DNA of 32,323 nucleotides from Macrostomum lignano. Its lineage: Eukaryota. The position numbers were made by a program, and so were the translations under genes. The stretch is from NCBI GenBank assembly GCA_002269645.1, contig NIVC01003164.1, positions 1 to 32,323 on the forward strand, written 5' to 3'. Position 1 is the first letter of the stretch. Each line of letters begins with the position of its first letter. Below, piece by piece: positions 1-27,317 of this stretch. The notes under the pieces were generated by a model, which saw nothing but the letters and a program-made list of their open reading frames with translations, did not search any database and was not told the DNA's origin.

Positions 1-1444
1 CCTGCGACAGTTGGAGGAGAAATTGAGCCAAGCCAAACATAAGCTTCCTTACTGATTCCGGAAGAGTTATAATATTGAATACTTCCTTCCGTTGGCTGTC
101 TGCATGGCAGATGCCAAACATCTTGAGGAAACCCTCGGTGAGAATTTACGCAAATGAATTCATTGAATTAATGCGATTTTTGACAAATCTTGTCCGATAA
201 ATCATTGCAGCATCTCGACCTGGCAAATATCTGATAAAATCATCCAGGTAAAGTTATATGCGGCAACTAGCAACAAAACTGAGAGTTAAATATGAGCATT
301 GACACATGGCAGAGCTGCAGGGCCTTGGCGTGTAGGTTGCGCTGTTAGTACCATGCGAAACGCAGAGTCTGCATCCGTCTTCTTGCCAGTGCCTGCAGTG
401 TCATTAGCGACTTCTCCTGCACCGCTTGTGGGCTGTTAACTCTGACTCTGAGTTTTGTTGTGGACCTGTGCGGAAGCAGTTGCTTGAATAGTGTTCGCTC
501 GTGTTCAATTTCATGACTGGCCTTTTAATTATCTCGTACACTTCAGTGCATTATTTCATTCATCATTTTCTAAATCTTTTTAAGCCGACAGTTTACTTTA
601 CAGCCAACTTAAAAATAACCTTCCCTCGATTGCCAGCAGAAGTTCGAAACCTCGCCAGCGACAGCTGATTAACGTCCAAAGCAGCAACTCCGCAAAGGCT
701 ATCCGCGACTGCCTTCTCAGCGGGACACCTTTGCAACAAGCGTCGCTACAGGCCTATATTGAGCAGCCACTGCTGGTTGACAAGCGCAAGTTCGACATCC
801 GCACCTTCTTAATGCTTGTCTGTCCAAAGCGCGGGCGGAGCTGGTGGCCGAACAAACGATTCCGGCTACTTCGCCTTCCACCATCCGGGCTTCCTGCATC
901 TTCGTCTCGAGCCATTCAACCCGCAATATCCGGAGCCTTCGCAAGACGGACCGAAATATCAGACGAGTCAGCAGCTCATGGAGGCTTGCACATGGTATCG
1001 GACGAGCTCAACGCTTACTTGAACAGAAAAAAAGGCTTCAGAATGCCCCCAGACTGGGTCAAAGTTAGGCTGTATCCACAAGCGAGAGCTGTTCTGGGCT
1101 ACCTAGCTGGCTTGCTTCGATGGAACCTACATGATCGCGTCTCCGCAACCAGCAGCTTCCGCATCATCAGCGCCCACATGCTTCTGGACGAGAGCCTCAG
1201 ACTGCACCTGCTGAAGTTGGACGATGATGCGCCAAATTGGAGCCGCCCAACCAGCGTGGTGGACTCCGTGCTGTCGAGCATTTGGCAGGAGGCTGTCTGT
1301 CTCGCATGCGAGATTGCCATCAGATTCAGAAGCGGCAGAACCATCAGCGATGATCACTTGGTAACCAGGCGGAACTTTCGCATGGTCTACAGCTCAGAGG
1401 ATCTGTGTCTCGCCAGACAGAGCGTCACTTTGATGTACGACTGA
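1..1444 (+). pseudogene. TTLL10: TTLL10-like tubulin glycylase (TTL family), 3' part; disrupted and catalytically degenerate
   Basis: Reconstructed exons <1..137, 211..247 and 592 (or 604)..1444 with GT-AG introns 138..210 and 248..591/603 in compatible phases. Motifs: NIEYFLP, KYLIKS (WIxKP equivalent), YIEQPLLVDKRKFDIRTF, YFAFHHPGFLHL, DELNAYL..DWV, FRIISAHMLLDESLRLHLLKLD and NFRMVYS, matching TTLL10 as I recall it. In-frame TGA at 53..55. The homologous frame shifts +1 near 815-850 and back near 995. Confidence 0.75.
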
Positions 1445-2152: not shown

Positions 2153-2844
2153 TCATTCAGCCATCCAGATGTCGTCACTTACATGTATTTCGCCGCTCAA
2201 GGCGGTGGCAAAGCTGTTGAGGTGTCAGAGGCCGCTGCTGCCGTTGAAGCAATACGGGGACTTGACCAGACTCTTCGCCATGCGAGCTCAGCCCAGAGAG
2301 AGGTTGCAAATTCCGCAGCTGGGATGAGCGGATGGGCGGCGGAGGCGGTGACCTTGTGAAATCGACGGCCCTGGGAGCCTGCATGCAATGTGGGAAACGT
2401 ATGGACAGAATACACTACATTTCACAGACGGAAAGTGAGTGAGAGTGAACATTCTCACAGATGGAATTTCTCTTGACTAAACCGTAAAAGCCGCATTTCC
2501 AGTGCAATAATCGTCTTTGCACTCCAGACCCTGTTGCTGAACCGCAGGAGCCGTAGCAGGAGCCACACTAATAGTAAAGGCCTGTCTGCACGCCTTCGTA
2601 TCGAAAACCGCCGTACAGATCAAACATCGTGTCTCCTCTGGACAAGATCACCTGTCTATCGTAGTTAAATATAAACGGGCCGATCTGGTCGATGCCGGCA
2701 AGACCCCGCAAGTCTCTGTTAGATTGGTCAATGAGGCAGCTGGCAAAGACTCTAATGGCCTTCGCTGCCCCAGCAACTCGCGGAGACTAGCAGAACGGCC
2801 ACTGCAACAGCTGCCCAAGCAGCGAGGACTCTGATGTGGCTCAT
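2153..2844 (-). pseudogene. WSC-PAN secreted protein paralog A (most decayed copy)
   Basis: ATG at 2844 starts a hydrophobic signal peptide (MSHIRVLAAWAAVAVAVLLVSA). After a frameshift comes FASCLIDQSNRDLRGLAGIDQIG, with the TVELCSEIC segment missing and an in-frame TAG. The exon-2 acceptor is at 2379/2378 (SQGRRFHKVTASAAHPL..AEFA), followed by further frameshifts, a Cys codon changed to TGA, and the end SFATALSGEIHVSDDIWMAE* at 2153. Confidence 0.8.
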
Positions 2845-2894
2845 ATCTTTCAGTGTTAAACTTATTTGTTGACTGAATTGAACCATGTTATTTA

Positions 2895-3101
2895 TTACAT
2901 GCCTTTCCGCACAGGATGGATGTTAAGCAAAGGCAAAAAATACACTGGAAGGAAGCTGCGCAATGCACGGTCAAACATTCTAATTTGGCAACCATATAAT
3001 ACAGAGACAGAAACCTTTAAAACATTGATTATAAATGCAGTATGCAAATCCCTAACCCCTATCATCCCGTCTTTCAGAACTATTAGACCAAATATTGTCA
3101 A
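2895..3101 (-). mobile_element. possible decayed LINE (RTE/L2-like) ORF2 C-terminal fragment
   Basis: The minus-strand ORF contains VSVSVLYGCQIRMFDRALRSFL, which resembles the SVLLYGCExW...F.R.LR.IL motif found downstream of the RT domain in RTE/L2-type LINEs. The match is short. Confidence 0.35.
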
Positions 3102-3515
3102 TTCAATGGGTTAAGCAAGGCTGTTACTGTTTAGAGTCAGTTATATTAAATTCGAAAAAGCTATAAAAAATCCATCAGATCGATTCTACAAGTATTGCAA
3201 CTAGACCGACCATATTTGGCTAGTCTAGGATTATTCTGGGATTTATTCTCACTTCTGTTAGAAAACAAAACCAACAAAAATACATTCTTTTTTTATTTTC
3301 ACAGATTTAAAGGTCTGAATTGTGTTTGCAATTGTATTTGTCGTAAATAGCTGCAAAAGTCTCTCTCTTATTAGTATTTATTATTGCACTCGAATCTGAA
3401 TAGTTAGTATTTCATTTGTGCCTTCGTCACCGAGTTCATGCACTGATTCAAAAAGTTAGCCAGCATAGTCTTCAGTCAAATCAGGAACAAAAAACTTATC
3501 CTGGACTTCAGGGCT

Positions 3516-4249
3516 TCAGCCGACGATCCAGACATCGCCAGTCTCCTTGTCGAATGCGGTGGCGAAGTTTCTGAGGCGGCAGAGGCCGCTGCTGCTGTTG
3601 AAGCAATAGGAGGAGGAGCTGGCAGACCGGGCGCAGGAGGCGGCGCAATCGATCCGACTCTGCGCCTTGACGTCCCAGCCCAGGGAGCCGGCGAATTCGG
3701 CAGTGGCGACCAGCTTTGGAGCGACAGAGGTGGCGAACTTGCGAAAGCGAGTATTTTGCAAAGCTGAAATAGAAATTTTTAAGGGCATAGAGCTCACTTT
3801 TCTCTATTGTATTCATAGCTTATTAGTAAAAATCTAACACTTCTCGACATACTCACTCGATGAGTACACATTTTCATAGATGGACTTTTGCAAACGACCT
3901 CCGCAAATCTGGCTAGCATTCCCGTAGCAATTCGTGTTTCACTCGGACTCTGGCGCTGGACCCCAGGAGCCGTAGCTGAAGTCGCACGAGCAGAAGCCGT
4001 AATCCTGCACCGCAGTGAATCGGAAACCACCGTAGGTGCAGATTTCACTGCACAGCTCCACCGTCATAGCAAGTCCAACCATCGATACCTTCTCTGGAAT
4101 ACTTGACTCTGAATGAGGCAAATTCTGCGATGCCAGCAAGGCCCCAATGTCTCTGTTTAGTGCGTCTTTGTCAACAAAGCAGCCACATAGACGGGAGTGG
4201 CTTTGCGCTGTAGAACGGCAGCAGTGACAACAACTTTAAGCATAGTCAT
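3516..4249 (-). pseudogene. WSC-PAN secreted protein paralog B
   Basis: Exon 1 is 3857..4249: shortened signal peptide, a 1-nt deletion in the YVGC codons near 4176, and a Cys codon changed to TGA at 3939..3941. The phase-1 GT-AG intron is 3764..3856. Exon 2 (3516..3763) is open: LQNTRFRKFATSVAPKLVATAEFAGSLGWDVKAQSRIDCAASCARSASSSSYCFNSSSGLCRLRNFATAFDKETGDVWIVG*. Confidence 0.88.
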
Positions 4250-5228
4250 TTGCGGCGACTGAGATGTGCTTAGCAGCTTGGCAGGACAAGTAATGTTGCT
4301 CACAAGTTCTTATAGATGTCAAATTCCATTGATAATAAGATCGCGTCTAAAACATCAATATTTATTGCTTTCATGGGCTAATGGCCGACCGGGAGACACA
4401 AAAAATCTAATTGACGAAGTGAATAATGTTGATCAAGTTTATTTTGCATTGCCTTCTCCAAATAAAACTGACCCAGGAAGAATGAGAAACTGGCTAATGG
4501 ACTCGAGAAAAAAGTCGAGAAAGGAGTGGACGAGAGATAAAAAGTTAGGGTATTGGCTTGGTTGTGCAAGTTCTAGTTGTCCACGATGACATACCGAGAT
4601 TAGAAGTTGCGAGATGGAACGATGAACGAACAAAGTCGGGGGTAGTAGCCTCATCAAAACAAGCTGATAAGCACGGTAAATTGATCAGATTGACAAGCAC
4701 TGCCCAGAATGAGTAAACATAAGCTAAGCTAAGCTAAATTGATTTAGGGTAATCTGATGCGCGCTACCTTCAAGGTCAGCAACGTCATAAGTTGCTTTAG
4801 AGAGGGAAAGAGTAGAAGTATTGTTTTAACACACTTCGTAATTAAGTTTCCAAAGACTCTCTGAGTCTGGAGTCTGGGGTGCTGCAACTGCAGATAGAGA
4901 GTGTTGAATGCCTCCAGTGCCAGCTCATGAATCAGAATCCATCAGTCAGCTTCCATGTATTTAGGTGAGAAGCTGATCAAACTGGATTCTCATGTTACTC
5001 CGCATCTTCTTTCATTTTTTCTTTACTTTGAAAATGCAACGATAGCCGTTTACCGTAGAATGAAAAAGAAGGAAAATAAAAAAATCTATAATAAGAACCA
5101 ATTAAAACTTAACTTGCAAATGTCTTTGCTTTCTAACCAAAATTTATTTTCAATTTCAAGTAGTTGGTCTGACAAGATTCCAAAAAACACAATGGGAAAT
5201 CGAGTCATCGAAATCGGGCTCCGAGGCT

Positions 5229-6085
5229 TCAGCCGACGATCCAGACATCGCCAGTCTCCTTGTCGAATGCGGTGGCAAAGTTGCTGAGGCGGCAGAGGCC
5301 GCTGCTGCTGTTGAAGCGATAGGAGGAGCAGCTGGCAGTCCGGGAGCAGGAGGCGGCGCAATCGATCCGGCTCTGCATCTTGACGTCCCAGCCAGGGAGC
5401 CGGCGAATTCGGCAGTGGTGACCAGCTTTGGGCGGCAGAGGCGGCGAACTTGCGGAAACGAAGTACCTGGATCCTGAAATGTGTTTTTTGCATCGAGCTT
5501 GTTGGCAAATGTTTTTGGATAATCTCAGCTTTCTCGTGCTTTACGATCTTAAGCTGTACATTTGACCTGGTCGAGTCGAATTTTGAACTTTACTGATCCC
5601 GGATGCATGAACCAACTTTTGGCTTTTAGTAAACCAGATCGGAATCCGAAAAAATTGTGCTCACCCGAGAAGGTACTCTTGTAGATCGAAGCCCGCAGGG
5701 AACTACCGCACACCTGACCATGATTGCCAGAGCAAGGATTGCTGCACTCGGCTTCCGGAGCGGAACCCCAGGAGCCGTAGCTGGAGTCGCACATGCATTC
5801 ATTACTATTCTGCACTGCGGCGTATTGAAAGCCACCGTAAATGCAGATTTCGCTGCACAGATCCACAGTCATGTCATGTCTGGACACGATGCCTTGGCTT
5901 GGGTGTAAGACACTGTATATGCCAAGCTGGGCAACACCAACAAGTCCCAGCATGTCTCTTTCGGGTGGAAGTTTGTCAACGAAGCAGCCGACATAGACCG
6001 GAGTGGCCTTGCGCTGGCACAGCGACTCGCCGGCCAGCAGAGCGACAGCCAGAACATTCGCTAGCACGGAGAGTCTGCTCAACAT
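5229..6085 (-). CDS. WSC-PAN secreted protein paralog C (open spliced frame, about 221 aa)
   Basis: Exon 1 is 5665..6085 (421 nt): signal peptide MLSRLSVLANVLAVALLAGESLC, then an 8-Cys WSC domain (YVGCFVD..RDM..MTVDLCSEIC..GGFQYAAVQ..ECMC..ECSNPCSG..CG..SIY). The phase-1 intron is 5474..5664 (GTGAG...TTTCAG). Exon 2 is 5229..5473 (245 nt) and ends GWDVKMQSRIDCAASCSRTASCSSYRFNSSSGLCRLSNFATAFDKETGDVWIVG*. Confidence 0.85.
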
Positions 6086-6714
6086 GGTTTGTAGAATAGG
6101 TGGGGGTGGTCGATTTTGCTGTCTGTGACTCTTTCTTGTATTGCCTAATGTAGCCTTGATGGCGCCTGTCAAACTGTTTCATGACTTTATAGATCAGCTC
6201 AGGCTAAGGCTTTCTGAAAGATTTCTTTCTTTATGCAGGAAGTTTGCCAGGCCGCATTGTCTGTGCGGTGGTCGCTGATGATTGATGCCGATGAGCTGAA
6301 ACTGCGGAAGCAAACCGGATGGATTGAATGAGAGACAGAAGCTCACGGTTAAATTTGTCCGCTTAGTAAGAAGAAGGAAAAGCAAGTCGATAAAGCTGTC
6401 TTACAATCATCGATTGAATAGCAGTAAAAAAGAATAGGACTAATTTGGGAAAAGATTTGAACCAATCGCCTGGGAAATCAAGCTCCTCGGACTCGCTATT
6501 AACAACAATTACAATTTTTGGGCATATAGCAACAACATTCACGAGGCAGTGTATTTTAAGACATCACATGATCAGCACATAACCACACGCTTTACCTCGT
6601 TCGAGATTCGGGAAGTTGCCAACACAACAGTATCAATAGCACAGACAATTGTCAATGCCATATGAATGAATTATAGATCCGAACTCACTTTATATTACTC
6701 TATAGGATTTTAAG

Positions 6715-6954
6715 GGTGGCTAGAATAGAGCACAGCGGACTAGAATTCAGTACAGGTGGCTAGAGTAGAGCACAGATGGCTAGAGTAGAGTACCGGTGGC
6801 TAGAGTAGAGCACAGGTGGCTAGAGTAGAGAACAGGGGGCTAGAGTAGAGAACAGGGGCTAGAGTAGAGAACAGGGGGCTAGAGTAGAGCACAGGTGGCT
6901 AGAGTAGAGCACAGGTGGCTAGAGTAGAGAACAGGGGGCTAGAGTAGAGCACAG
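6715..6954. repeat. 20-bp minisatellite, about 12 copies (GGTGGCTAGAGTAGAGCACA)
   Basis: Direct tandem periodicity with GGTGG/GGGGG and GCAC/GAAC variants. Confidence 0.95.
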
Positions 6955-7055
6955 AAAGAAAACTCGTAGACAAGTTTTTACTCATTAACTATGTCTGCAG
7001 TACTTGAACTGGTTTCAGATTCGTTTCTCGCCAAGCTAAAGCCAGTTGCCAAAGT

Positions 7056-7876
7056 TCAAGTTGCAATCCAGACGTCGCCGGTCTCATTCGCCAAAGCGAC
7101 GGCGAAGTTGCTAAGGCGGCAGAGGCCGCTGCTGCTGTTGAAGCGATAGGAAGAGCAGCTGGCAGTCCGGGCGCAGGAGGCTGCGCACTGCATCCGGCTC
7201 TGCGTCTTGACGTCCCAGCCCAGGGAGCCGGCGAATTCGGCAGTGGTGACCAGCGGAGGGGCGGCAGAGGCGGCGAGCTTGCTAAATTCACGGCCATGGA
7301 AGTCTGCAACAAATACATAACCAGTTTTTCAAAATCAGTACAAGGGTTGTACTTTTACTTTTGCATCGGAAAAATTGCTTTAGTCGCCGCCACTTAGTCT
7401 TTTTGGGAATTTTTTGGGAAAAAGGATAAAAAATACTGGAATTTCCTCTCACTCGATGGGTACACATTCTCGTAGATTGAGTTCCTGTACGCTCCACCGC
7501 ACATCTGCTTAACGTTCCCGAGGCAGTGCTGGTTACACTCAGTCTCTGGCGCGGGACCCCAGGAGCCGTAGCTGGAGTCGCACGAGCAGGTGGCATAATT
7601 CTGTAGGGCGGCGAACCGGAAGCCGCCGTGGGTACAAATTTTGCTGCACAGCTCAGCTGTCATGTCGGACCTGGACAGAATTCCCTGCGTGATGTAGGTG
7701 ACGCTGAATGGGCCGAGCTGGGCGATGCCAACGAGGCCCTACATGTCTCTGTTTGGCGGAGCTTTGTCTCTGAAGCAGCCCGCGTAGACCGGAGTGACTT
7801 TGCGCTGGCACAGCGACTTGGAGACCAGCAGAGCCACCACTACAGCAGCCGTTGCTGCAGAGAGTCTGGGACGCAT
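7056..7876 (-). pseudogene. WSC-PAN secreted protein paralog D (single nonsense codon)
   Basis: Exon 1 is 7453..7876 (424 nt): signal peptide MRPRLSAATAAVVVALLVSKSLC and a full 8-Cys WSC domain, with one in-frame TAG at 7739..7741 (ATG TAG GGC, where copy C has Met-Leu-Gly). The phase-1 intron is 7304..7452. Exon 2 (7056..7303) is open: FHGREFSKLAASAAPPLVTTAEFAGSLGWDVKTQSRMQCAASCARTASCSSYRFNSSSGLCRLSNFAVALANETGDVWIAT*. Confidence 0.88.
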
Positions 7877-8685
7877 GGAATGCGGTTGTTGTCACTTGCG
7901 CGACCGTAAAATTTCAGGTCACTATCGCAGTAAAGAGGGTTTAGACTGTCTGAGTCTCTTGTTTTTCGGATTGAGTGGGATAAAGGCAGCACTTCATAGT
8001 TCGTTTTATACTTTTTTCCTGGCTTCTTTCGATGTTAAGAATAATAGACGGCAGCGGTGTGTTGTAGCCAGCAGTCAATAGAATCCCGTGTTTTAAACTA
8101 GTGGGTTCACGAGTAACTTTATTGATTGATAGAATCGAATTCAATGCTGCTGATAGACATGCTAGAAACATGCCATGAGAATTATCTGCAGTCCTGGTAT
8201 CATTTGGTATCTTTCCCAAGGGTATTCAGTGACAGAACAGGCAAAAAATTCCACCCTAGAGGTTCAAATTTCTCCATTTTCCAGTAGATTTCGTGAAACA
8301 ATACGTTGAAAAGTGCCAGCATTTCAGCAAAGTTCGTCTATCCTTCGAAAAAAATTGTCCACCTCCATCCTTCAGTCTGCCGCGACCGATTCTGATTGCA
8401 TTCTGATTGGCATTGCATGCTCTGCGAGAGTATTTCATGCACAGTTTGGTTAATTTCAAAGTGATTCCCTGAATAGTATCTGGTTAAAAATCTTGTCGAT
8501 AAAATTTAGTCATACGAGTAACAAGCAATTTAATTTTTTGATAAAAAATCTCATTTAGGGAAGCAACCGTTGAATTCCATGGAGATTGGGTGTCTTACCA
8601 CACACTAAACAGTAGAAAAATAGCTAAGCCAAAATAGCTAACTTCATAGTGAAGTTAGACATACCTGTCTGTCGCTGAAAATAAG

Positions 8686-9190
8686 GTGAGAGTCTCAAAG
8701 TCAGACTCGAAACATTACTGAGAAGGCGCCACTCACACTACTGGAAAAACAATATTTTAAAAGTCGCTCGTAGTCATCGTTTAGAACAGCAGTTCGCAGC
8801 ACAAAAGTCAAGAAACGTAACGAACAGGAACGGCACCAGCGTATCTAAGGATGTCTAGAAGGAGCCACAGAGGTATAGGAGGATCCGTCCGGTTTTTGTG
8901 CCGAGGTACATCGTCATGTTAGCGTAAATCAGCTAATGGGAGTACCTGACGGGAGTACGGCCTTTTCAAGGTGGGTGGACATCCAGTCTATGTCGCCGAT
9001 GAAGGCACCCACTGTTATTAATGCCCTTCGCAGAACCTTCGAATACATTGGATTACCGAGAAATCTACGAGTAGTTTTAGACAAAGATGGCACTTTTTTT
9101 CTGAAGAGTTCAAACATTGATTATACGCTTACTTCTTCAGGAAACCATCAGTTCAATGGTTCATCAGTTCAACCCAAGTTCTACTTATAA
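8686..9190 (+). mobile_element. decayed Ty3/Gypsy LTR-retrotransposon integrase fragment
   Basis: ORF 8936..9190 contains FSRWVDIQSMSPMKAPTVINALRRTFEYIGLPRNLRVVLDKDG..FLKSSNIDYTLTSSGNHQFNG, which follows the rve core pattern (SKW.....M....A...I..L...F...GLP..IVSDNG...F......H.....P.SNG). Upstream LLRRRHSHY..ILKVARSH resembles the HHCC zinc-finger start. Stops and frameshifts are present and no LTRs were found. Confidence 0.6.
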
Positions 9191-9738
9191 ACAGCATCAA
9201 AACTATCCTTTGATTCTGCTACAAAATACCCTTTTAAGTTATTTATAAGCTCAAAACTTGTGCCGTCAATGGTAGGTTCAGTGTTCTTCTGTTCTATTCG
9301 TACATATTGCTTACATTTATATCTAGCTCAGACGGCTAGCAACAAAGACAAAGACAAAAGAAGTAGAGAGTACTGTACACTACAAGTACTGTAAGTACTC
9401 TCAGTTACATTTACCAATTTAAGTTTCAGCTTTCTTAACAGACTATTGTCCAGCATCTAAGTAGTGCAAAACGAAAAATTCCTACTCGTATGCTTTTCTC
9501 AACAGAAAACTGTAAAGTACATTTCGTGTCCCCAACAAAAGAAAAAACGGACTGGGATTCTAACAGAACAAACTTATCATTTTTCAAGGGTGCCGAGGTG
9601 AGACTGGGCCAGCTTCTTTCGAACACCCCGACCGGATGCTTTTCATTACATCCCATAGTCTCTGTAAGTTTTCATATCAAATACTGAATTTTAATGCCAT
9701 GCACCGGCTGCCTGAAATGTGGGAAGACAGAAGTAGAC

Positions 9739-11820
<2,082 letters not shown>

Positions 11821-13934
11821 GGGAGAGGCAAATTTAGAGAGAACAGAGAAAACATAATTGATATTGATGGAAGCTGCCATTCAGGCACTCGAGTGCAGTC
11901 ATTCGAGCAAATTTTAATGGATTTTGCGATTTTAATTTAATCAAAAAACTTCACTGCTGTCTAATCTTGACTTTTTATTCATTGAAGATAAATTCTGCAG
12001 CTGCTGTTTGCTGACTGCCAGCTTCACATGCAGCAATAAAACAAGTGATGATAAAAATTGAATTAAAAATCTGTCATCGCAGTCCCATTGTTAACCCGGC
12101 CTGGATTTCATTTCCCAATCTCAGTCAGGCATTCAGGCGCTGCCAAGTGAAGTGCATTGAGCGAGATGAGGATGCCAGATATTGGGTGTCGCTGACTGTG
12201 CTCAAGGTTCTGCACCGCCTGCTGATTTACGACGCGACTTCGACGACGAGCCTACAATATCGACGCTCTAGCTCTCCAAAGATCTGCATTAAAAAACTGG
12301 CGCTACCGGAGAGATTGAGAATGGATCGAGGGACTCGACGTCATCACGCCGATCAAGGTGGCCAACTGGGAGATCTGGACCCAGCGCTTTGCCACCCGTA
12401 TTGATTTTTTGTCAAGCGTCAGTCAGCATTAACTGTGCTGGGTAACTGCGTCTTCGGCGGCTGCGTGTGATGATGTGATAGCGGGCGTGGTCGCGCACTG
12501 ACGGTGGTAGAGAAGAACTGAGAGTTATGCTATGGCTCTTTATAAATATATTTTCCCGAAGGATAACTTTCTTTTCAAGAGTTTTTTATTTTGACGCAAA
12601 AATCACAATACAGAAAGAATTTGCATGTATTCGACATGCAGAAGCATCTGAAAAGCATGTGAATTAAAACAAAGTGACTTTGAAACCCTAAATTTGGAAG
12701 TTACTGTTGATTTTGAGAACAGGATAGGAAATGCTCTGAAATGATAGACTGAAGCTGTTCTGCTTTTGCTTTTAGGATGGCCTGCATGGGATAGCTCGGC
12801 TCCATGACCATTCCGCTGCTACATGTGACTGTGACCCTTTTTAAAGCGGATTCACTTACGTTCACTTGAGTTCACTAAGTAATGGAGAAATGGAGATGGA
12901 GTAACGAGGCATAGCGACAAGGTTAACAATAAACTGAAGGATTAGCACTATTACCTGATGACCCATGGGTTAAACCCTGTCTGGCCTCTTATAGATATAT
13001 TTTAGCAGGGCTACAATACTTTGTAGCTTTAGCAAATTAGGCAAATTGTAGTATTGTAGCTTAGCTACAAGCTAAAGCTACAATACTTTGAGTGAATGGG
13101 GTGACTCAGTCTCTTTTGGGAGGCTGGGAAATGTATGAGTTTTCCCTTAGTCTTTGACGGAATTAAATTTTCCATAACATAAGCAGAGCTTACCATTAGC
13201 CGTCAGAAAAGCAATAAGTTTTGCATGTGGCCATAGATTAAAAAACAGGGAAAAAGTGTTGTGCATAGGACAAGATATCAGGTACTTGTAGCTATTCATT
13301 GTCTACTCTTACATAAAAGAAAGGCTTTTGGGACTAACGAAAATTCCTCATCAATTGTGTCGCGATGAATAGCCCGGGTACAAAGCTGTCGAAAAAAAAG
13401 ATGGAAAAGACACGCATGGTGGGAAGGACCATTAGTAGTGTTAAAGTCTTAGTAGTCCTTTTCATGGTGAAGTCATCTGACTTTTTTTTACCATTCTGAT
13501 TGATTGTTCAAAGCAATTTCCGCAGCTGCATCACGAATACAGATAGAATTGCTGTATTTTTTCCTCTGGACTACGAACTCAAGTAAAAATATGAGAATAC
13601 GATGCATAATTTTGTATGCAAAACTAGCTTTGTAGTTTGTAACCAAGCTTTGGGAATGCAAGTTTGCAATGAGTAGAATTACTAAGAGGATTAGGATCAT
13701 TAAAAAATCTTTCACTCATTGAAGACAACTCGCCAAAATGTGTCTATTGCGAGTTGTTTCTGTTGAAGAGGAATTGCACAGGAGTACTTGTTGCTTGCCT
13801 ACATGTATTTCCATGCTTTGTTGTTGATTCGTCAGTAAACAGCATTTGTTGAATTAAAAACTTCTGCAAGAGCATTTGGAAAAAAGAGAAATTTGTTTCA
13901 AAAAAATATTTTCTTTCTAGATTAAAAAGCCCAC

Positions 13935-15960
13935 GAAGCTTTCTGTCGGCAGTTTCGGGAACTATGCATCACACTCACACATCTGGTAGAGCAGCTAGCA
14001 AATTCTGAAGCTTTCTGTCGGCAGTTTCGGGAACTATGCATCACACTCACACATCTGGTAGAGCAGCTAGCAAATTCTGAAGCTTTCTGTCGGCAGTTTC
14101 GGGAACTATGCATCACACTCACACATCTGGTAGAGCAGCTAGCAAATTCTGAAGCTTTCTGTCGGCAGTTTCGGGAACTATGCATCACACTCACACATCT
14201 GGTAGAGCAGCTAGCAAATTCTGAAGCTTTCTGTCGGCAGTTTCGGGAACTATGCATCACACTCACACATCTGGTAGAGCAGCTAGCAAATTCTGAAGCT
14301 TTCTGTCGGCAGTTTCGGGAACTATGCATCACACTCACACATCTGGTAGAGCAGCTAGCAAATTCTGAAGCTTTCTGTCGGCAGTTTCGGAAACTATGCA
14401 TCACACTCACACATCTGGTAGAGCAGCTAGCAAATTCCGAAGCTTTCTGTCGGCAGTTTCGGGAACTATGCATCACACTCACACATCTGGTAGAGCAGCT
14501 AGCAAATTCTGAAGCTTTCTGTCGGCAGTTTCGGGAACTATGCATCACACTCACACATCTGGTAGAGCAGCTAGCAAATTCTGAAGCTTTCTGTCGGCAG
14601 TTTCGGAAACTATGCATCACACTCACACATCTGGTAGAGCAGCTAGCAAATTCTGAAGCTTTCTGTCGGCAGTTTCGGGAACTATGCATCACACTCACAC
14701 ATCTGGTAGAGCAGCTAGCAAATTCTGAAGCTTTCTGTCGGCAGTTTCGGGAACTATGCATCACACTCACACATCTGGTAAAGCAGCTAGCAAATTCTGA
14801 AGCTTTCTGTCGGCAGTTTCGGGAACTATGCATCACACTCACACATCTGGTAGAGCAGCTAGCAAATTCTGAAGCTTTCTGTCGGCAGTTTCGGGAACTA
14901 TGCATCACACTCACACATCTGGTAGAGCAGCTAGCAAATTCTGAAGCTTTCTGTCGGCAGTTTCGGAAACTATGCATCACACTCACACATCTGGTAGAGC
15001 AGCTAGCAAATTCTGAAGCTTTCTGTCGGCAGTTTCGGGAACTATGCATCACACTCACACATCTGGTAAAGCAGCTAGCAAATTCTGAAGCTTTCTGTCG
15101 GCAGTTTCGGGAACTATGCATCACACTCACACATCTGGTAGAGCAGCTAGCAAATTCTGAAGCTTTCTGTCGGCAGTTTCGGGAACTATGCATCACACTC
15201 ACACATCTGGTAGAGCAGCTAGCAAATTCCGAAGCTTTCTGTCGGCAGTTTCGGGAACTATGCATCACACTCACACATCTGGTAGAGCAGCTAGCAAATT
15301 CTGAAGCTTTCTGTCGGCAGTTTCGGGAACTATGCATCACACTCACACATCTGGTAGAGCAGCTAGCAAATTCTGAAGCTTTCTGTCGGCAGTTTCGGGA
15401 ACTATGCATCACACTCACACATCTGGTAGAGCAGCTAGCAAATTCTGAAGCTTTCTGTCGGCAGTTTCGGGAACTATGCATCACACTCACACATCTGGTA
15501 GAGCAGCTAGCAAATTCCGAAGCTTTCTGTCGGCAGTTTCGGGAACTATGCATCACACTCACACATCTGGTAGAGCAGCTAGCAAATTCTGAAGCTTTCT
15601 GTCGGCAGTTTCGGGAACTATGCATCACACTCACACATCTGGTAGAGCAGCTAGCAAATTCTGAAGCTTTCTGTCGGCAGTTTCGGGAACTATGCATCAC
15701 ACTCACACATCTGGTAAAGCAGCTAGCAAATTCTGAAGCTTTCTGTCGGCAGTTTCGGGAACTATGCATCACACTCACACATCTGGTAAAGCAGCTAGCA
15801 AATTCTGAAGCTTTCTGTCGGCAGTTTCGGGAACTATGCATCACACTCACACATCTGGTAAAGCAGCTAGCAAATTCTGAAGCTTTTTTGTCGGCAGTTT
15901 CGGGAACTATGCATCACACTCACACATCTGGTAGAGCAGCTAGCAAATTCTGAAGCTTTC
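13935..15960. repeat. 72-bp satellite, 28 near-identical copies
   Basis: Unit GAAGCTTTCTGTCGGCAGTTTCGGGAACTATGCATCACACTCACACATCTGGTAGAGCAGCTAGCAAATTCT. From 13935 to 15952 is 28 x 72 + 1 nt, the extra T lying near 15885. Only three recurrent single-base variants occur. Confidence 0.99.
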
Positions 15961-16571
15961 GATCCTAAGCAGACATTGTCAGTGGTTCTTTTTTATTTTA
16001 AATGAAAGAGTGAATAAAAGCATACTCATATATTCGAGTTGAAAAATATACGCATTGAAACACTAAAAATTAATTCAATCATGGTATTTGCAGTTTTTCG
16101 ATGTGGTCAGCCCTAGGTGCTCTCATATATCTCCGAAATTTCATATTTCCGAAATTTCATATCTCCGAAATTTCATATGTCCGACAGCATCTTTTTCATA
16201 TTTCCCACACTTCATATCTCTGTTATAAGTGAATTTAAAGAAGCTTAACGTCACATTCTATTTTGATTTGCTCATTATTAGCGAGTTCGTTATTCAGAAA
16301 CTTGCTGATGTGAAACGAGTATTGCATGTAGTAATTGGGATAAACATTGGCTCAAAAAATCCTTAGAAGCTTAGGACGACAATCTTTGTCAAACATCAAA
16401 CTTGCATCAAACTGCGACTGCCATGTCCGACAGCGCTGACGATTTTAGCTCTTAGGGCAAGGTATCAGATGTAATAATCCGTAATTATGGTTCACTTTCA
16501 CCGTCTGTCAAATATCGTGAAGCGCCGTTTATTTAGGTGTTGTTTAGACAAAGCAGCTCTCGAGACTGGCC

Positions 16572-17608
16572 TTAGTTGGCGATCCAGACGTTGCTGAAGT
16601 TTCCACTCGCCGGGATGGCGGTGAACCGGCTGATCCGGCACAGCCTTCCGCTGCTGTTGAACCGGTAGGCCAGGCAGTCCCACTGAGCAGCCAGACGGCA
16701 GATGGTCGCGCACTGGATCAGATCAATAGCCGGCAGGCTCAGTTCGGCTACTCCTTTGAAGTTGGCATCGAGAACTAGCAGCGGGACGGTGGCGGCGGCG
16801 ACTCGGCGAAACCGACGGCAGTCGCTGAGCTGCAAGCCATCTATAGGGTTTTGGATGGCAAATTTCACTGTTGATTTGCTGAACCTGATGAGTCCTCATC
16901 AGTCCCTGATGAACGATTAAAGTCAAGTTCGGTTTCCTTGACTTTACATTCAAATGAATGCTGGGTGCAAACCAGATGACTTAATTAACATTTCTTTCCT
17001 AAACCGGAACGGAATCTGATGGTTGCGGACTCAGTCTAACATAAAATTCGAGCTCTAATTTACAACTATTTGCCTATTTTGACTGTGTTGTAGAATAGGA
17101 AATTAAGATTTATCATAGAGCATTTGTGCAGAAACTTCAACTGAACAAGAACTATGGTTCCCTGATTCGCACCTGCCCATTGGACTGTACCTGAGTACAC
17201 GTTCTCATAAACGGAGTTGCGGAATTGGCCACCACAGGTTTGAGACACATTGCCCATGCAGGCCATGTTGCACTCCAGCTCGCTTACTTTGCCAAGCGAA
17301 CCGAACTGCCAGTCGCAGCTGCACTCCTTGCTGTATTGCAGGGCAAAGTACCGGAAACCGCCGATGGCGCAGACCCGGCTGCACAGCTCCACCGTCAGAG
17401 ACGGGCTGGACAGAATTCCCTTCTCCGTGTGATTGATGCCGAATTGACCAAGTCTGGCAATTCCAACCAGACCTACGATGTCTCTATTTGGCATGGCCGC
17501 ATCCGCGTAGCAACCAACATAGCTGAGTGCGGCTACAGTTCGCTGGGCCAGCGACGGAGCGACTAGCAGAGCTGCAGCAACCGCGACAAGCTGCAGGCGA
17601 ATCGCCAT
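16572..17608 (-). CDS. WSC-PAN secreted protein paralog E (intact, most divergent, about 228 aa)
   Basis: Exon 1 is 17191..17608 (418 nt): signal peptide MAIRLQLVAVAAALLVAPSLA and an 8-Cys WSC domain (YVGCYAD..NRD..LTVELCSRVC..GGFRYFALQ..ECSC..ECNMACMG..TCGG..NSVY). The phase-1 intron is 16841..17190. Exon 2 is 16572..16840: RRFRRVAAATVPLLV..IQCATICRLAAQWDCLAYRFNSSGRLCRISRF..NVWIAN*. Confidence 0.9.
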
Positions 17609-18559
17609 CTTGGACTGTTTTGGAAAATCCTGCAGCAGTTGCGTCTGAGCAAAGACATGATAGAAAAATTGAAAGCTGCTTAACAAGCCGGCAGGATTAA
17701 CTCACCAGAAGGCAATTGGTCCACCGTCTCTCTTGCTTTGGATTGGAGGAAGGAAAATACTTGTAAAAACTGACTGCCGTTGTTCCAGCTTTCAAAAACT
17801 GACTGCAATGATTTCTGTTTGAGAGCACATGGAGAGTGCAAAAAATAAATAGCAGATCATGATTGAAACCTACTTCTACATTTAGCTTACTTTGCAAGAA
17901 GAAAAAATACTGAAATATCTAAAATATCGAACTACTGAAATATCGACAACTATATTCAGCAAAGAAAAAGTTCAACCAGAGAAAACCCGAGACGCGGGGG
18001 CGCCCGCATGCCTGTTTTTGTCTTCTCAGTGTAGAAAGCTTTGTATTTTCTACTTTGCAGGATTCAAATGGCATGTCTAGTCGATAAAAACCCCGTTTGA
18101 GATGAAGTAAAGCAAAGTCTTTAGGGGGGTTCTATTCGTGCAGTCCATGAGGTACTTAATTGATGGCTGCCTAAACTCCGACGCCATGAGGCTTTGGACG
18201 GGTGCCAAAACTAATTAGCCACTATAACTAACTCCGCAAGCATCGCGTACTTATCATCTGCAATAAGTTCCGTTTGAGAGCGATAACGTTTAAGTCTAAT
18301 TTATGTCAGCTTCACGCCAAAAGGGATGGAACAAGGGAAACATATATGTTAAATATCGAGATTCAAAAAAACTAATTCCCGGTTCAGATTAGCATTCCCG
18401 GTTGCCTGCACAGAGACTCTGAGTAATTTAGGCTTTTACGCTACAAGGATTTCAAACTATGCAGTGCCCTCTGTTGCCTGTAAACTCTGTCTTCTATCTA
18501 ACTACAGCTCGATCGCCTGAACCGAAAAATCTTATTTAAACTTCAGAGCCTTTGATTGG

Positions 18560-19334
18560 GAGGTAGCAGAGCAGCTCAGCGGGAAGCGCGTCGGACTCTT
18601 GCGTCACGACACCCTGGTTCGCCTTGCGTCACGACACCTGGTTCGTTTTGCGTCACGACACCTGGTTCGTCTTGCGTCACGACCCCCTGGTTCGCCTTGC
18701 GTCACGACCCCTGGTTTGTCTTGCGTCACGACCCCTGGTTTGTCTTGCGTCACGACCCCTGGTTTGTCTTGCGTCACGACCCCTGGTTCGTCTTGCGTCA
18801 CGACCCCCTGGTTCGCCTTGCGTCACGACCCCTGGTTTGTCTTGCGTCACGACCCCTGGTTCGTCTTGCGTCACGACCCCCTGGTTCGCCTTGCGTCACG
18901 ACCCCTGGTTCGTCTTGCGTCACGACCCCTGGTTCGTCTTGCGTCACGACACCTGGTTCGTCTTGCGTCACGACCCCTGGTTCGTCTTGCGTCACGACCC
19001 CTGGTTCGTCTTGCGTCACGACCCCTGGTTCGTCTTGCGTCACGACCCCTGGTTCGTCTTGCGTCACGACCCCTGGTTCGAATCCGTGCGCAAACACATT
19101 CATTTGGGGCTTGTGTAAATGCACATAGATTGGCACACCCATGGGACAACCCCTCAATGCAGAGAGTGTACATGCCTGACGATTAGACAGTCAGGACCGC
19201 AGTACACCCTGTGTGAGCGTGTGTACGAGTGCGTGCCTGCATACAGTATTGGTGCGCTTGTATGTCCCCAGGAGTCAGCGAAATGGGCAGAATTGCAAAT
19301 ATGTATAAGCATTGAATACACTATATAATACACA
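18560..19334 (+). mobile_element. tRNA-derived SINE with 16-bp TSD and an internally amplified tRNA head
   Basis: A-box-like CAGCTCAGCGG at 18572..18582 and a perfect B-box GGTTCGAATCC at 19075..19085. TCGGACTCTT resembles the tRNA-Lys(CTT) anticodon arm. An about 250-bp body ends in an AT-rich tail. Flanking direct repeats CAGAGCCTTTGATTGG (18544..18559) and CAGCGCCTTTCATTGG (19335..19350) match at 14/16. Confidence 0.8.
18598..19080. repeat. 24-bp (some 25-bp) CpG-rich minisatellite, 20 copies, inside the SINE head
   Basis: Unit CTTGCGTCACGACCCCTGGTTCGT; 20 occurrences of GCGTCACGAC counted. Confidence 0.97.
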
Positions 19335-21032
19335 CAGCGCCTTTCATTGGCAGAATATTTTAAGCTGCTAATGTCAGTAATATCGATACCAGCTCAGAAA
19401 TCCTACAACCCCAAGTTTGAGATCTTCGTCCTAATGGCGCCACCCAGCTAATAAAAGCCGTAGAGTATTGGGCTCGAAATAATTAAATTGTCATAAAGCT
19501 GAACAAAATTATAGTTTATTGGATTCAAAATGATCAGATCACCGCAAATAGAAGTGTTTTTATGTCAAAATATCAAAACACACGAATTCTATTGTATTTT
19601 TCTCATTAATAATATGACTGTAATTTTTGTACAAGCAAGCGTGGGTTTGCGAGAAAGAAAATCGAGTAAAAAAGCAACCCTAACCGGACTCAAAGAAATT
19701 TGGAAAAATGTTATGAAATATACAGCTAGCTAAATATCATTTATGAGAAATGCGAAAAATGAACGAAAAAATGAAGCATTGTTACATCACAATTGTATTT
19801 TGTCAGCCCTACTTTGCGAGCAGGAATAGGAGTTTCCGAGGGAGCTCGAGGCTTCCCAGTTCTGCCCAACAAGGAGTCATAATATACCATTGATATTTAT
19901 ATTATATATTATATTATATACCATTCATACTAGTGTTATAGTTAGCTGAGACTGTCTATGGTAAAATCCCATTTACTCCAATGCATTCAGTCGGTTTTAC
20001 GGCCCGCTGAAAACGTCTATGGCAAAGTCAGAAGAAAGCGGGGTCAAGGGGGTGCTGAGCACACCAGCACTCTATGCCAGCGAGTGTCGACCATAGACAG
20101 AAAATCTTCAGTCTCGCCAGTCTGATTTCCGTATCTATGACTAAATTGAAAGCTTGCAGTACCAACTAGGCCGCAAAATGGAATACTAAGCATTATTAAG
20201 CAGCACTAAGCTTTAATTTTAAAATATACAAGTTGTAGAAAGATTAACTAGATACTTATATGCATACGATTTTTTTACTTATTGAAGTCGGCCATAGATT
20301 ATTGCAGCGGGCGGGATGCCTTGCGTTTTACCGCGTTTCAGCACGCCTAGGCTAACTATAATTGTATTATTAGTAGGCTTTTTACCATAGATATTTGCCG
20401 CTGCTAGACGGGGTGCGGGGCAAGAGCGTCCGTTAGGGGGTTGGGGGCGAAGCCCCACATTCTAACCATAGACAATCGGGCACGCCTAAAGACTCACTGA
20501 CTTAAACTTTTAAATACTCAAAGCTTAAACAAATAGAAACAAAAATGGAGAAAAAATATGAGCTAGTATTTACACGCTTTACAGGATGAAGGTTAACTAC
20601 TTAAAGTAGCCGAAAGAGAACATGAGTATAAAAATAAAGATATATATATGCATATTTTTCGACCCGTAGAGTCTAATAATATTTAGACCCGTAGTTCTAG
20701 AGTGGTAGCACAAAATATAGCAGCGATGCGCATTCAGACTACTGCTGAAAAAACGTTTTTTATTGTATAAGAATTATCAATGGCTGCAAGGTGTGGCAAA
20801 TATTTTTTGGCTAATTGTGCCTGTCAGTTTCACAGTTATTGTTTTTGTACTCCGGGTATTAACACCAGCCGAAATAAGCAGTTATATCTATCATACTTGA
20901 GGCTGAAATTGCAGAATTGCAGACATAATTAGAAATCCAAATAGTAACTGTTAAGCTCTTAAATACATATATCAGACTGACACCTTTAAAGCCTTTAAAT
21001 GCGCACCACTCACCAAATTTAAGGCGTCAGTC

Positions 21033-22215
21033 TCAAGCTTTCCTATCATCAGAGTCCCAGCCATTATCTTTAATCAGGTGCGCCAGCTCGATAATGTATT
21101 TTCCCTCTTTGTAGCGCTGCGAGCTCTCAAAGGCGCGCTCGTATTTCCAGCCTAGTACGGTTCGACAGCCGTGACAGTAAATGTCCGCCACGCTGTGCAA
21201 GCCAGTGAGCAGCAGCCGCTCCTCCGCTGGACCAACAATCACGTTCACTACGCGATCGAATAGGTAGGCCCTGCCCTGGCTGCCCTGTGGGTCGGAGAGA
21301 TTGGCTGCTCTGACTAAACAGTGTCTGAATTTAATAGGCTAGCTCCTATACAAGGACTGTTGGAATGCTTAGTCAGGGAAGGAATTGAGGTGGCTGACTG
21401 GACTGGAGATGCGGGGAAGGGAAGGGAGTGGGGTGGCTGGCTGGACTGGAGATGCGGGGAAGGGAAGGGAGTGGGGTGGCTGGCTGGACTGGGGATGCAG
21501 GGAAGGGAAATGAGTGAGGTGGCTGGCTGGACTGGAGATGCGGGGAAGGGAAGGGAGTGGGGTGGCTGGCTGGACTGGAGATGCGGGGAAGGGAAGGGAG
21601 TGGGGTGGGTGGCTGGACTGGAGATGCAGGAAAGGGAAGGGAGTGAGGCGGCTTTCTGGACTGGAAATGCGGGGAAGGGAAGGGAGTGAGGTGGCTGGCT
21701 GGACTGGAGATGCGGGGAAGGGAAGGGAGTGGGGTGGCTGGCTGAACTGGAGATACGGGGGAGTGAGGTGGCTGGCTGGACTGGAGATGCGGGGAAGGGG
21801 AGTGGGGTGGCTGGCTGGACTGGAGATGCGGGGAAGGGGAGTGGGGTGGCTGGCTGGACTGGAGATGCGAGGAATGGAATGGAGTGGGGTGGCTAGCTGG
21901 ACTGGAGATGCTGGGAAGGGAAGGGAGTGGGGTGGCTGGTTTGGATGGAAAGATTTCATGTACCAGTGTCCACAAGTAAGCAAGCCCAACCAGCCACTAT
22001 GAAAGAGTTGCTAATAATTCAGCAAGCCTTACATGAAAACTCTTGCTAATTAGGTCAGCATGAGCAGCCAGGTGAGCTCGGCAGTGCATGCAGGCATAGG
22101 TGCGCTCGCAGTCGCCATTGGGTGACAACTGGTCAACACCACTGACACTGCTGCAGACTCGACCATTGCCACTGTTATTGCCAATGTCAAGATAAACTTG
22201 AAATGTCCTGCCCAT
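21033..22215 (-). CDS. YPEL: yippee-like zinc-binding protein (YPEL1-4 class), 144 aa, two exons
   Basis: Exon 1 is 22033..22215 ([33 protein letters not shown]). The phase-0 GT-AG intron is 21285..22032. Exon 2 is 21033..21284 ([76 protein letters not shown]). Both CxxC pairs are intact. Confidence 0.95.
21376..21939. repeat. about 43-bp G-rich minisatellite, about 13 copies, in the YPEL intron
   Basis: Unit GGCTGGCTGGACTGGAGATGCGGGGAAGGGAAGGGAGTGGGGT. It accounts for the low-complexity ORFs at 21321..22002. Confidence 0.95.
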
Positions 22216-24689
22216 TGACAGAGTGTATACAATATGCAGTCCAGAACAAGATGAGACTCAACTGATGAAACACTGGACTAAGTGCACACCTGGTCTTCCA
22301 GGTAGATATACACATGCATTATAAAAAAACCAATGAAATTTTCTTTAATAGATGAACAATAGGCAACATTCAGTTAGTACATGCATAATGTGAATAAAAT
22401 TCTTATTAAAACCTGCTTCAATAGGTTTTTGGTTATTAAAAAATTGAAGATATTTTTGACTATAGAGAAATTTAAACCCAACCATAATTATATTAATAAA
22501 TTGACAATTTTTGCTGCACTAGAATTGAGCAATTTGGGCACACAAAATTCAAGAACACGGGCAAACTTTTTGCTGCATACCTTCTTAAACAAGCATCAAA
22601 TTGCCAGCACTCGACCATTAAGACATTAAACCATTCTATTAGAAGGTCATATTGTTTTTTTGTAAATGCAAGAAGAAATATAAATAAATTATCAAAGGGA
22701 TTCTCCCTTTAAAAATTTTTAAATAGTTGATACATTTTTAAATGTAAAAAATTTTTAAATAGTTAAATAGTTTTTAAATAGCTGATTAAATATTTTTTAG
22801 AGGCTAAGATTAAACTACACTAATTATTATATTGAATATTTGGCTTAATATACTACTAGCATCAAAATTATTTTATATAATTTATCTATAATTTCTATTT
22901 TCTATATATTAATATTTACCAATTGACTATCCTATTTAGCAATTATTAGAATTAGAAGTATCAACTTCTATACTTAAAATTTCTAAATATTAACTCTATT
23001 ACAACAAAATCATAAAATCATAAATATATAATCATCCCTTTTACTCATTGTTATACTACTGTCTTTCTAGATCAAGGTAGATCCAAGGGGCCATGGACCC
23101 TACTTAGCTAGGGCCAAAACATTTGGGCCATATATTTACATTATTATTTTTTTTACCTATTATATGTATCACTATTAAAATGACTTAGTAATTTTACTAT
23201 AGTCATAGATATAGATTGGTCCCTTTCCTTAATTTTGTCTCTAAATTTCCAAAACTAATTAAAAGTCTAATTTTGTCTTGAAACAAGTGCTCTTACAAGC
23301 CAATGAATAGGCCCTAACTTTAGGTGCACAAGACGAACATATGATATTACTCAGACTACTTATACGATGCTGCAAAATCCATCCTTCTTAGGCCGGAATA
23401 AAAATTTGAGTGATCGTGGCTTTCAAATTAGTGCTATTTTTGTTGCTGCTCTAACTTGATTAAAACACATGCTTTGAAGGTTAAAATCCAAATGAGTTTA
23501 AGTAGGCCTAATTGGTCTAGGAGTGAAAATTAAAATGCAAAGCACCACGCTGTTGTTGTATATATCCTATTCAATAAAGAAGTAATATATATAGAGTCCG
23601 TTGTTTTAGATCGATTGGAGATCTTGCGTAGCTGGCGAATACACCCCACTTACATTATTGTACCTCTGGAATTGCATTGGCTATTGATCCTTTTGATATG
23701 CACAAAATTATTGAGCGAATGCGTTTTAGCTATAGCCAATGCGGGTTAGTCGACGCGGCCAGAATTTTGTAATAGGAATTAAAAAATAAGATATTATAAC
23801 ACCGTATGCATGTATTTGCTAACAACCAAAGGAGGAATGGCCGGTGCCCTGCTGGGGATCTTACGCGATCAAGAGTAAAAACTGGAACGAGGGGCGATTT
23901 CGGACATACGAGCGTAGACATAAAACGATGCCCCGGCCCTTCTAACTTGAATACCAATTTATGCACAACACGTCGAATTAATGTAAGTATCTTTCGTAGC
24001 TACATGCCTCTCCGAGTTGCAGCTTGTCAGAAATCACCGCCACACGTGGCTTGTGTATGGCCAATAGCAAAACCTTTAGAAAGTCGCATCATATACGATG
24101 TAGACAATGTCGATATATCGATGATAACCTTGATCAAGGCGTTCTTCTGAGCGGCCAGAGCATGTATACAATTTCCTCTTTGTGTAGCACTATACACCAT
24201 TCTCACACGCTGTGGTCAAACGATGGAATGCACAACAGCGTGGTCCGTTGCGAATGTTTATGGTTAGTATAAGACTCGCCATTGATTCATGTTTGAAATT
24301 TTCATTTGTGCTCTATAGACCAATGACCGATGACAATGACGCTCTCTCAATCCTTTAAAGCTACTTCTTAATATGATCTTTGAAATGCGCATTTAAAAGC
24401 GCTGATAGAGTTTATACATGTACGCTCGTATACATGTATCACTACCTCACTATATATATAACATCTGTGCTTACACCAGAAAGAATTTACTTGGATTTTG
24501 GTCTCTTGTCTACATTTAGTTAACTCGCACTGGTCTGTGAAACTTGGGCTACTATATGCACGTACTGTAATAAGTCTTTACTTCATGTAGACATACGGTA
24601 TACGTGTGCATTATGAGGGTCATGGTTGATCGATTAATGATCAAGTTTTTCGATGCAATCAGTGCCAGCATTACAACTATCTGTGACGC

Positions 24690-24931
24690 CAGTGGCGGAT
24701 CTAGAGTTTCATTTGGGGGGGGGGAGCGGTCCAAGTTTGGGGCGCCAACACGAGTGTAAGGGGCGCCAATTTTTAAGCTAGGGGCGCAAAAAAATGCGTG
24801 TAGGGGGCGAAAAATCAAGTTTAGGGGGCGCAAAGTTAGGTTTTTGGGGGGCGCAATATGTTCGGTCAAGCTATTTTGGGGGGGCGGCTGCCCCCCCCCC
24901 CCCCGCCCCCTCCCCACTAAATCCACCCCTG
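24690..24931. mobile_element. non-autonomous hAT-type DNA transposon (MITE), 242 bp
   Basis: The left end is CAGTGGCGGATCTAG and the right end CTAAATCCACCCCTG (12/15 match to the reverse complement). An 8-bp TSD flanks it: TGTGACGC (24682..24689) and TGTGATGC (24932..24939). Internal poly-G/poly-C tracts and GGGGCGC repeats are present. CAG termini with an 8-bp TSD are hAT hallmarks. Confidence 0.8.
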
Positions 24932-27293: not shown

Positions 27294-27317
27294 GTTTTTC
27301 ACCGCTGCTGCTGGCTT

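Follow-up and report, generated by a model that had tools for sequence, protein, structure and literature searches.

We analyzed the whole 32-kb contig NIVC01003164.1 (assembly GCA_002269645.1; 32,323 nucleotides, hereafter the window) of the free-living flatworm Macrostomum lignano, which carries a tandem array of gene copies whose predicted products combine a WSC domain with a PAN-type module in a small, probably secreted protein. Searching the window by tblastn with the conceptual proteins of two of the copies, D and E, returned exactly five loci (2427-2786, 3525-4184, 5238-6085, 7059-7876 and 16575-17608), with E-values from 1e-7 to 1e-94, and all five lie on the minus strand. When the DNA of the copies, designated A to E, was aligned, similarity was limited to two exons, the introns and spacers being unalignable. 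An earlier, first-pass annotation of this DNA had described five paralogs on the same strand, and both the protein search and the DNA alignment bore out their number and positions:

2153-2844, minus strand: copy A, a heavily degraded pseudogene.

3516-4249, minus strand: copy B, a pseudogene; exon 1 at 4249-3857, intron at 3856-3764, exon 2 at 3763-3516.

5229-6085, minus strand: copy C; exon 1 at 6085-5665, phase-1 intron at 5664-5474, exon 2 at 5473-5229.

7056-7876, minus strand: copy D; exon 1 at 7876-7453, phase-1 intron at 7452-7304, exon 2 at 7303-7056.

16572-17608, minus strand: copy E, 228 residues; exon 1 at 17608-17191, phase-1 intron at 17190-16841, exon 2 at 16840-16572.

The units share a simple layout: an ATG followed by a hydrophobic N-terminus, a WSC-like exon, a GT...AG intron, a second cysteine-containing exon and a stop codon, which is TGA in copies A-D and TAA in E. 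In B, C, D and E the intron is in phase 1 and falls at the boundary between the WSC and PAN domains (junctions 3857/3763, 5665/5473, 7453/7303 and 17191/16840, respectively); the junctions of C and E had been proposed earlier, and for both of them we found GT and AG in place and confirmed the phase. An AATAAA or ATTAAA motif follows the stop codon by 39-134 nucleotides in A, B, C and E, and neither motif was found within 200 nucleotides after the stop of D. An alternative acceptor for E, a TTGCAG 11 nucleotides downstream that aligns with the acceptor of B and D, was dismissed, since neither candidate phase-1 donor is in frame with it. Two NCBI gene models of relatives elsewhere in the genome, BOX15_Mlig003631g5 (P0172) and BOX15_Mlig005479g1 (P0123), each have a single phase-1 intron 2-3 residues past the end of the WSC domain, which is exactly the position at which we placed the intron in B-E. 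These models provide independent support for the splicing pattern, and not for transcription of the copies in the window.

The state of preservation differs greatly among the copies, four of the five carrying lesions. Copy E is the sole cleanly intact gene: its first exon encodes a signal-peptide-like N-terminus and an eight-cysteine WSC domain, its second a PAN-type module with four core cysteines and one extra, and its TAA stop is followed 39 nucleotides downstream by AATAAA. Copy D is one stop codon short of intact, with a single in-frame TAG at 7741-7739 (DM*GLVG) and both domains otherwise whole. In copy C the signal peptide and WSC domain of exon 1 are intact and exon 2 has three 1-nucleotide deletions, one near 5433, one near 5394 and one between 5473 and 5450. 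Since these sum to three, the spliced frame stays open, and about 27 residues between the WSC domain and the PAN core are read out of frame. Two UniProt entries near-identical to C, A0A1I8JKN1 (P0003) and A0A1I8IAD4 (P0004), provide the in-frame version of the scrambled stretch, 'GSKVHRFRKFAASAAPKLVTTAEFAGSLGWDVK'; they come from another assembly, and each has its own, different frameshifted stretch. Because the frameshifts of these two models differ and the deletions of C sit in short C or G homopolymer runs, the indels of C may be assembly errors. The stops of B and D are of the substitution type and are less likely to be artefacts than indels.

The two remaining copies, A and B, are pseudogenes. 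Exon 1 of B contains four 1-nucleotide frameshifts and a TGA at 3940-3938 that replaces a conserved WSC cysteine, and its PAN-type exon 2 is still an intact open reading frame (ORF). We considered an alternative genetic code in which this TGA would be read as cysteine, and rejected it because B, C and D all terminate at TGA. Copy A has accumulated many frameshifts and in-frame stops, an 18-nucleotide deletion that takes out two WSC cysteines and deletions of 27 and 6 nucleotides that take out the C-x3-C of the PAN module, and retains only a short remnant of the intron.

Domain assignments were made against Pfam with its curated cut-offs of 27.8 bits for WSC (PF01822) and 21.4 bits for PAN_1 (PF00024). 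The WSC domain scored well above the cut-off in both C (55.4 bits, 7.5e-15) and E (52.2 bits, 7.4e-14), as it did in the relatives of the family (44-59 bits), and we regard this assignment as solid. For PAN_1, exon 2 of D gave the best match in the window (33.1 bits, 5e-8), followed by C (25.8 bits), and the UniProt relative P0003 was also above the cut-off (30.6 bits), with B just under it (20.2 bits). Among eight family proteins scanned, seven had PAN_1 after WSC, four of them above the cut-off, and one (P0133) had no PAN match. The first-pass annotation had named Pfam matches in spliced C and E as a check on its domain reading; WSC was recovered in both and PAN_1 in C, but in E the PAN_1 match stayed below the cut-off. 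The PAN assignment thus has good support at the level of the family but is borderline for E alone.

The cysteine patterns fit these assignments. The WSC domain of E contains C33, C76, C80, C96, C98, C113, C117 and C125, with the motif 'TCGG', and in an alignment of 12 family sequences seven of these eight positions are invariant, C33 being present in at least 90% of the rows. In the C-terminal module the motif C-x3-C-x5/7-C-x2-Y-x-FN-x5-C is found as originally described, and its four cysteines (C183, C187, C195 and C207 in E) are invariant in family alignments, their disulfide pairing being our prediction. Both the eight-cysteine and the four-cysteine motif of the first-pass annotation are therefore borne out. 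A strict apple domain has six cysteines, with an outer disulfide joining the first and the last, whereas this module has four conserved cysteines only. Copy E has in addition C148 (window 16820-16830) at the start of the PAN module, which has no C-terminal partner and recurs in the relatives P0135 and P0121. The resulting total of 13 cysteines is odd, and the extra one could form an intermolecular disulfide.

A family profile built from the 12 sequences was also searched against the sequences of the PDB. Its WSC part matched the WSC domain of Kremen1 (4e-10) and yeast Wsc1 (7e-7), and its C-terminal part matched PAN proteins only, with E-values of 0.002-0.14 that included Sarcocystis SML-2 (0.0024), the N domain of hepatocyte growth factor (HGF; 0.004), Toxoplasma MIC4 (0.01) and the PAN of a fungal oxidase (0.06). 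A Foldseek search with an AlphaFold (AF2) model with a mean predicted local distance difference test score (pLDDT) of 49 ranked Wsc1 and Kremen WSC first (E 2e-4, target-normalised TM-score 0.64), with the PAN domains of plasminogen and HGF next at E-values of only 0.4-0.6. The crystal structure of a WSC domain has a PAN/apple fold, with two helix-to-strand disulfides in common (PMC9024836). The two modules are therefore less dissimilar than the first-pass annotation had assumed, and the product is in effect best regarded as a tandem pair of PAN-superfamily binding modules, one elaborated (eight cysteines) and one minimal (four cysteines).

We predict that the protein is secreted, because small residues occupy positions -3 and -1 of its hydrophobic N-terminus (SLA|Q in E) and E has no second hydrophobic segment, its sole strongly hydrophobic 15-residue window lying at the N-terminus within residues 1-22. 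This agrees with the earlier proposal of a product lacking a membrane domain. Conserved FNSS and GNxS sequons suggest that the protein is probably N-glycosylated. Overall, the proposed architecture of a signal peptide, a WSC domain and a PAN-type module in about 220 residues, with no enzyme domain, was supported, and the domains lend support to its description as a secreted lectin-like protein.

We then asked how widely this architecture is distributed. A word-indexed protein search with E alone returned no matches, and a search with an alignment of the window copies matched two C-like UniProt entries, P0003 and P0004. An exhaustive HMMER search of 1.84 billion representative sequences gave 5709 hits, mostly multi-WSC proteins of fungi, protists and molluscs. 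Among the best 150 of these, which we inspected, all the hits we looked up that span both domains as a single unit of 176-219 residues were from M. lignano, annotated as 'WSC domain-containing protein' or 'hypothetical protein BOX15_Mlig...', and the Mytilus, lichen-fungus, chytrid and metagenome proteins that we checked for WSC followed by PAN, because their match extended beyond the WSC domain, turned out to contain several WSC domains and to lack PAN. Going by the databases, the family is specific to the Macrostomum lignano lineage. That the window genes belong to a multi-copy family, as had been proposed, is supported by these searches.

The suggestion that no such family had been described did not hold, as the same architecture already stands in UniProt and NCBI for M. 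lignano in entries labelled as uncharacterised (e.g., A0A1I8JKN1, PF01822 + PF00024); in the literature, we found no paper describing a small secreted WSC+PAN family. The M. lignano 'WSC domain-containing proteins' (A0A1I8JKN1, A0A1I8G2U8, A0A1I8GZB9, PAA52995.1 BOX15_Mlig005479g1 and BOX15_Mlig003631g5) resemble the window genes in having 205-220 residues, a signal peptide, a WSC domain and a PAN-type module, and they share with them the pattern of eight plus four cysteines and a phase-1 intron between the two domains. They differ in that copy E, which is unannotated, is only 28-43% identical to other M. lignano subfamilies, and in that only one of the five window copies is undamaged. Further members of the family include Mlig021789, Mlig023418, Mlig003588 and Mlig025784. 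Two longer database entries consist of several WSC+PAN units, eight in UPI0007A152E4 (P0005; 2673 residues) and five in UniProt A0A1I8IQU1 (P0006; 1074 residues). These are fused gene models of another tandem array plus unrelated downstream sequence, artefacts that inflate similarity scores; their units are mostly intact and only 75-87% identical to the window copies. In a further locus, on contig NIVC01000620.1, an uncalled exon of the WSC family lies at 19340-19741 of that locus (minus strand), inside the range of an annotated F-box gene and about 9 kb from P0172. Unannotated members therefore seem to be common.

Divergence among the copies points to an old array. Synonymous divergence (dS) between copies is about 0.7-1.4, by which we judge the copies to be old, and the ratio of nonsynonymous to synonymous divergence (dN/dS) is 0.25-0.43. 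The first-pass annotation had pictured a family expanding locally; with lesions in four of the five copies and divergence of this order, the array in the window is instead mostly decaying. The two exons tell different histories, as seen when exon 2 (3516-3763, 5229-5473 and 7056-7303) and exon 1 (3857-4249, 5665-6085 and 7453-7876) of B, C and D are compared. Nucleotide identity is 86-93% in the PAN exon, reaching 93% for B and C, versus 70-73% in the WSC exon, and dS is 0.1-0.3 versus 0.9-1.2. The cleanest pair, D and C, gives a dS of 0.31 in exon 2 and 0.92 in exon 1. This suggests that exon 2 of B, C and D was homogenised by gene conversion limited to that exon, or that the exons are of different ages.

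The window is colinear with part of a 115-kb contig, NIVC01003168.1, at 94-99% identity, and is thus an allelic or recently duplicated copy of that region. Copy E, its intron included, is identical on this sister contig. Within the part of the window whose annotation was inspected (15452-32323), the NCBI gene calls consist of an acyl-CoA ligase gene and a Yippee gene only. Other features of the contig are as follows:

731-1444, plus strand: an ORF upstream of the array with a weak tubulin-tyrosine-ligase match (PF03133, 26 bits), probably an exon of a tubulin-tyrosine-ligase-like (TTLL) gene.

9739-11819: between the A-D array and E, a (TTAG)n microsatellite with about 523 copies; the resulting 2-kb block is 26% GC and has an extreme GC skew.

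13935-15960: a 72-bp minisatellite of 28 copies at 98% identity, which yields a spurious 642-residue ORF on the minus strand.

25452-27293, minus strand: an intronless, NCBI-annotated gene for an ACSF2-like medium-chain acyl-CoA ligase of 613 residues with a mitochondrial-presequence-like N-terminus; a paralog or allele, PAA52896.1, is on NIVC01003168.1.

6715-6954, 18597-19080, 21375-21939, 28105-28861, 29874-30938 and 31941-32323: six more tandem-repeat arrays with periods of 20-43 bp, one reaching the contig end and one inside the range of the Yippee gene; copy number differs from that on the sister contig.

Taken as a whole, our findings are probably best explained by a lineage-specific tandem family that evolves by birth and death and whose secreted WSC+PAN product binds glycans or glycoproteins. 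Such binding is proposed for both modules because of what WSC and PAN domains do elsewhere. The product, about 205-230 residues long, would be a disulfide-rich and probably N-glycosylated protein, and, given binding through both of its modules, it may hold or bridge two ligands at once.

Systems that resemble parts of this protein are found well beyond flatworms. The best matches to exon 1 by both sequence and fold, the WSC domains of Kremen1/2 (PDB 5FWS) and yeast Wsc1 (PDB 7PZ2), have the eight-cysteine WSC with CGG in common with the window proteins. However, Kremen, with its Kringle-WSC-CUB layout, is a transmembrane Wnt/Dkk co-receptor and Wsc1 a membrane stress sensor, whereas the window proteins are small, predicted to be soluble and equipped with PAN. 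SML-2, MIC4 and the N domain of HGF and plasminogen represent the sole kind of PDB match to the C-terminal module and share its core of a helix C-x3-C and hairpin cysteines; these matches are weak, at E-values of 0.002-0.05, the window module has four cysteines and no outer apple disulfide, and the apicomplexan proteins are tandem apple arrays that lack WSC. Fungal AA5_2 copper radical oxidases (PDB 6RYV) carry an N-terminal WSC or PAN_1 as accessory binding modules on secreted proteins (PMC9024836), and their PAN was the one matched at 0.06. There the modules are attached to an enzyme, whereas the window proteins have no catalytic domain.

Our leading guess for the biological role, and a tentative one, is a secretion of the reproductive-tract glands (prostate or seminal fluid), because many WSC-domain proteins of M. 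lignano are expressed there. By our count in Table S1 of one study, WSC-type BLAST hits such as 'fungistatic metabolite' and 'WSC domain-containing' occur for about two dozen of 76 prostate-limited candidate transcripts for seminal fluid (PMC5977470). Mlig-pro46 and others are similar to WSCD2 (PMC6953679), and RNA815_80.4, a transcript of the prostate, encodes two WSC domains (PMC4490696). These prostate-limited candidates (Mlig-pro46, RNA815_80.4/Mlig-pro5 and others) are like the window family in being secreted WSC proteins of the same species in multi-copy clusters, but those described contain at least two WSC domains or resemble WSCD2, and none is reported to contain a PAN module. Six gene IDs of the family were found in no searchable paper. 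We consider secretion by reproductive glands no less plausible than the immune or adhesive role proposed earlier.

Several observations weigh against this overall interpretation, at the level of expression, fold, distribution and role. No copy in the window was linked to any transcript, copy E has no NCBI gene call on either NIVC01003164.1 or NIVC01003168.1, and a collection of 15 billion proteins contains neither the exact spliced E and C proteins nor their exon-1 ORFs. Taken alone, E scores 18.4 bits for PAN_1 against the cut-off of 21.4. The AlphaFold models are poor (pLDDT 42 when built from a 4-sequence alignment, 49 from one of 13 sequences), which accounts for the weak fold match of the C-terminal module. 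Lineage specificity may be a sampling effect, with the proteomes of other macrostomids probably missing from the databases; moreover, the multi-WSC proteins that crowd the best 150 hits would outscore single-unit relatives from other taxa. As for the role, what ties the family to the prostate and seminal fluid is the shared WSC domain and nothing more: the gene IDs of the 18 Mlig-pro transcripts that have been tested match neither the window nor known family IDs, and the 36 primers used for RNA interference of these 18 candidates had no match in the window at up to three mismatches.

A different way to read the same array is that the copies in the window (A-D, and perhaps E) are untranscribed relics, with the working members of the family elsewhere in the genome, and we give this a real though minority chance. 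It would account for the disabling or scrambling lesions in four of the five copies and for E going uncalled on both contigs while its relatives P0172 and P0123 were called, and the fused models P0005 and P0006 reveal another array, of mostly intact units only 75-87% identical to those studied here. Yet E is fully intact, with GT/AG junctions and an AATAAA, and is identical on two contigs, and the dN/dS values indicate past constraint. Furthermore, some of the lesions may be assembly errors, as the deletions of C are in short homopolymer runs and the C-like models differ.

The birth-and-death interpretation that we favor leaves room for more than one use of a secreted glycan-binding protein, among them a mucus or adhesive role and immune pattern recognition, each suggested in the first-pass annotation. 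As to immune recognition, there are WSC domains in fungal proteins that bind beta-1,3-glucan, xylan or chitin, and the PAN/apple modules of the apicomplexan microneme proteins matched by the family profile are known galactose-binding lectins. Secreted WSC+PAN proteins could likewise bind microbial glycans, fungal beta-glucans for example, and serve in mucus or epidermis as soluble lectins for recognition or agglutination, and multi-copy, fast-evolving, pseudogene-rich families are typical of immune lectins. Nonetheless, our literature search found no immune paper on this family in flatworms, and the sole tissue data for WSC proteins of M. lignano point to the prostate; we consider an immune role unlikely. 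Finally, it is highly improbable that the units are exons of one large gene for a multi-repeat WSC/PAN protein, as the database models A0A1I8IQU1 and UPI0007A152E4 would have it, since each unit starts with its own ATG and signal-peptide-like segment and ends in an in-frame stop, with AATAAA or ATTAAA beyond it in all but D, NCBI models of relatives are single units, and the fused models continue into unrelated sequence.

What is new here is an unannotated intact member, copy E, together with a map of the decaying array around it and a conserved gene structure; this is not a new kind of system. Outside M. lignano the advance is incremental, since neither the domains nor their general functions are new. 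For this species it exposes three annotation problems: at least one intact member (E) is missing from the current NCBI gene calls, UniProt contains some family models that are fused or carry frameshifts, and copy-number counts taken from automatic annotation will mislead because the arrays hold many pseudogenes. M. lignano serves as a model in research on sexual conflict, regeneration and bioadhesion. Its seminal-fluid candidates prominently include WSC-domain proteins, and a family of small WSC+PAN proteins would offer simple, expressible candidates for glycan-binding effectors of such secretions. More speculatively, and with considerable doubt, the genes may represent a macrostomid-specific family of double PAN-fold lectins within a fast-evolving reproductive-gland or seminal-fluid secretome, turning over in tandem by birth and death, with gene conversion keeping exon 2 alike and the WSC exon drifting apart. 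If so, the WSC module may be the part of the protein that tracks changing partner or microbial glycans.

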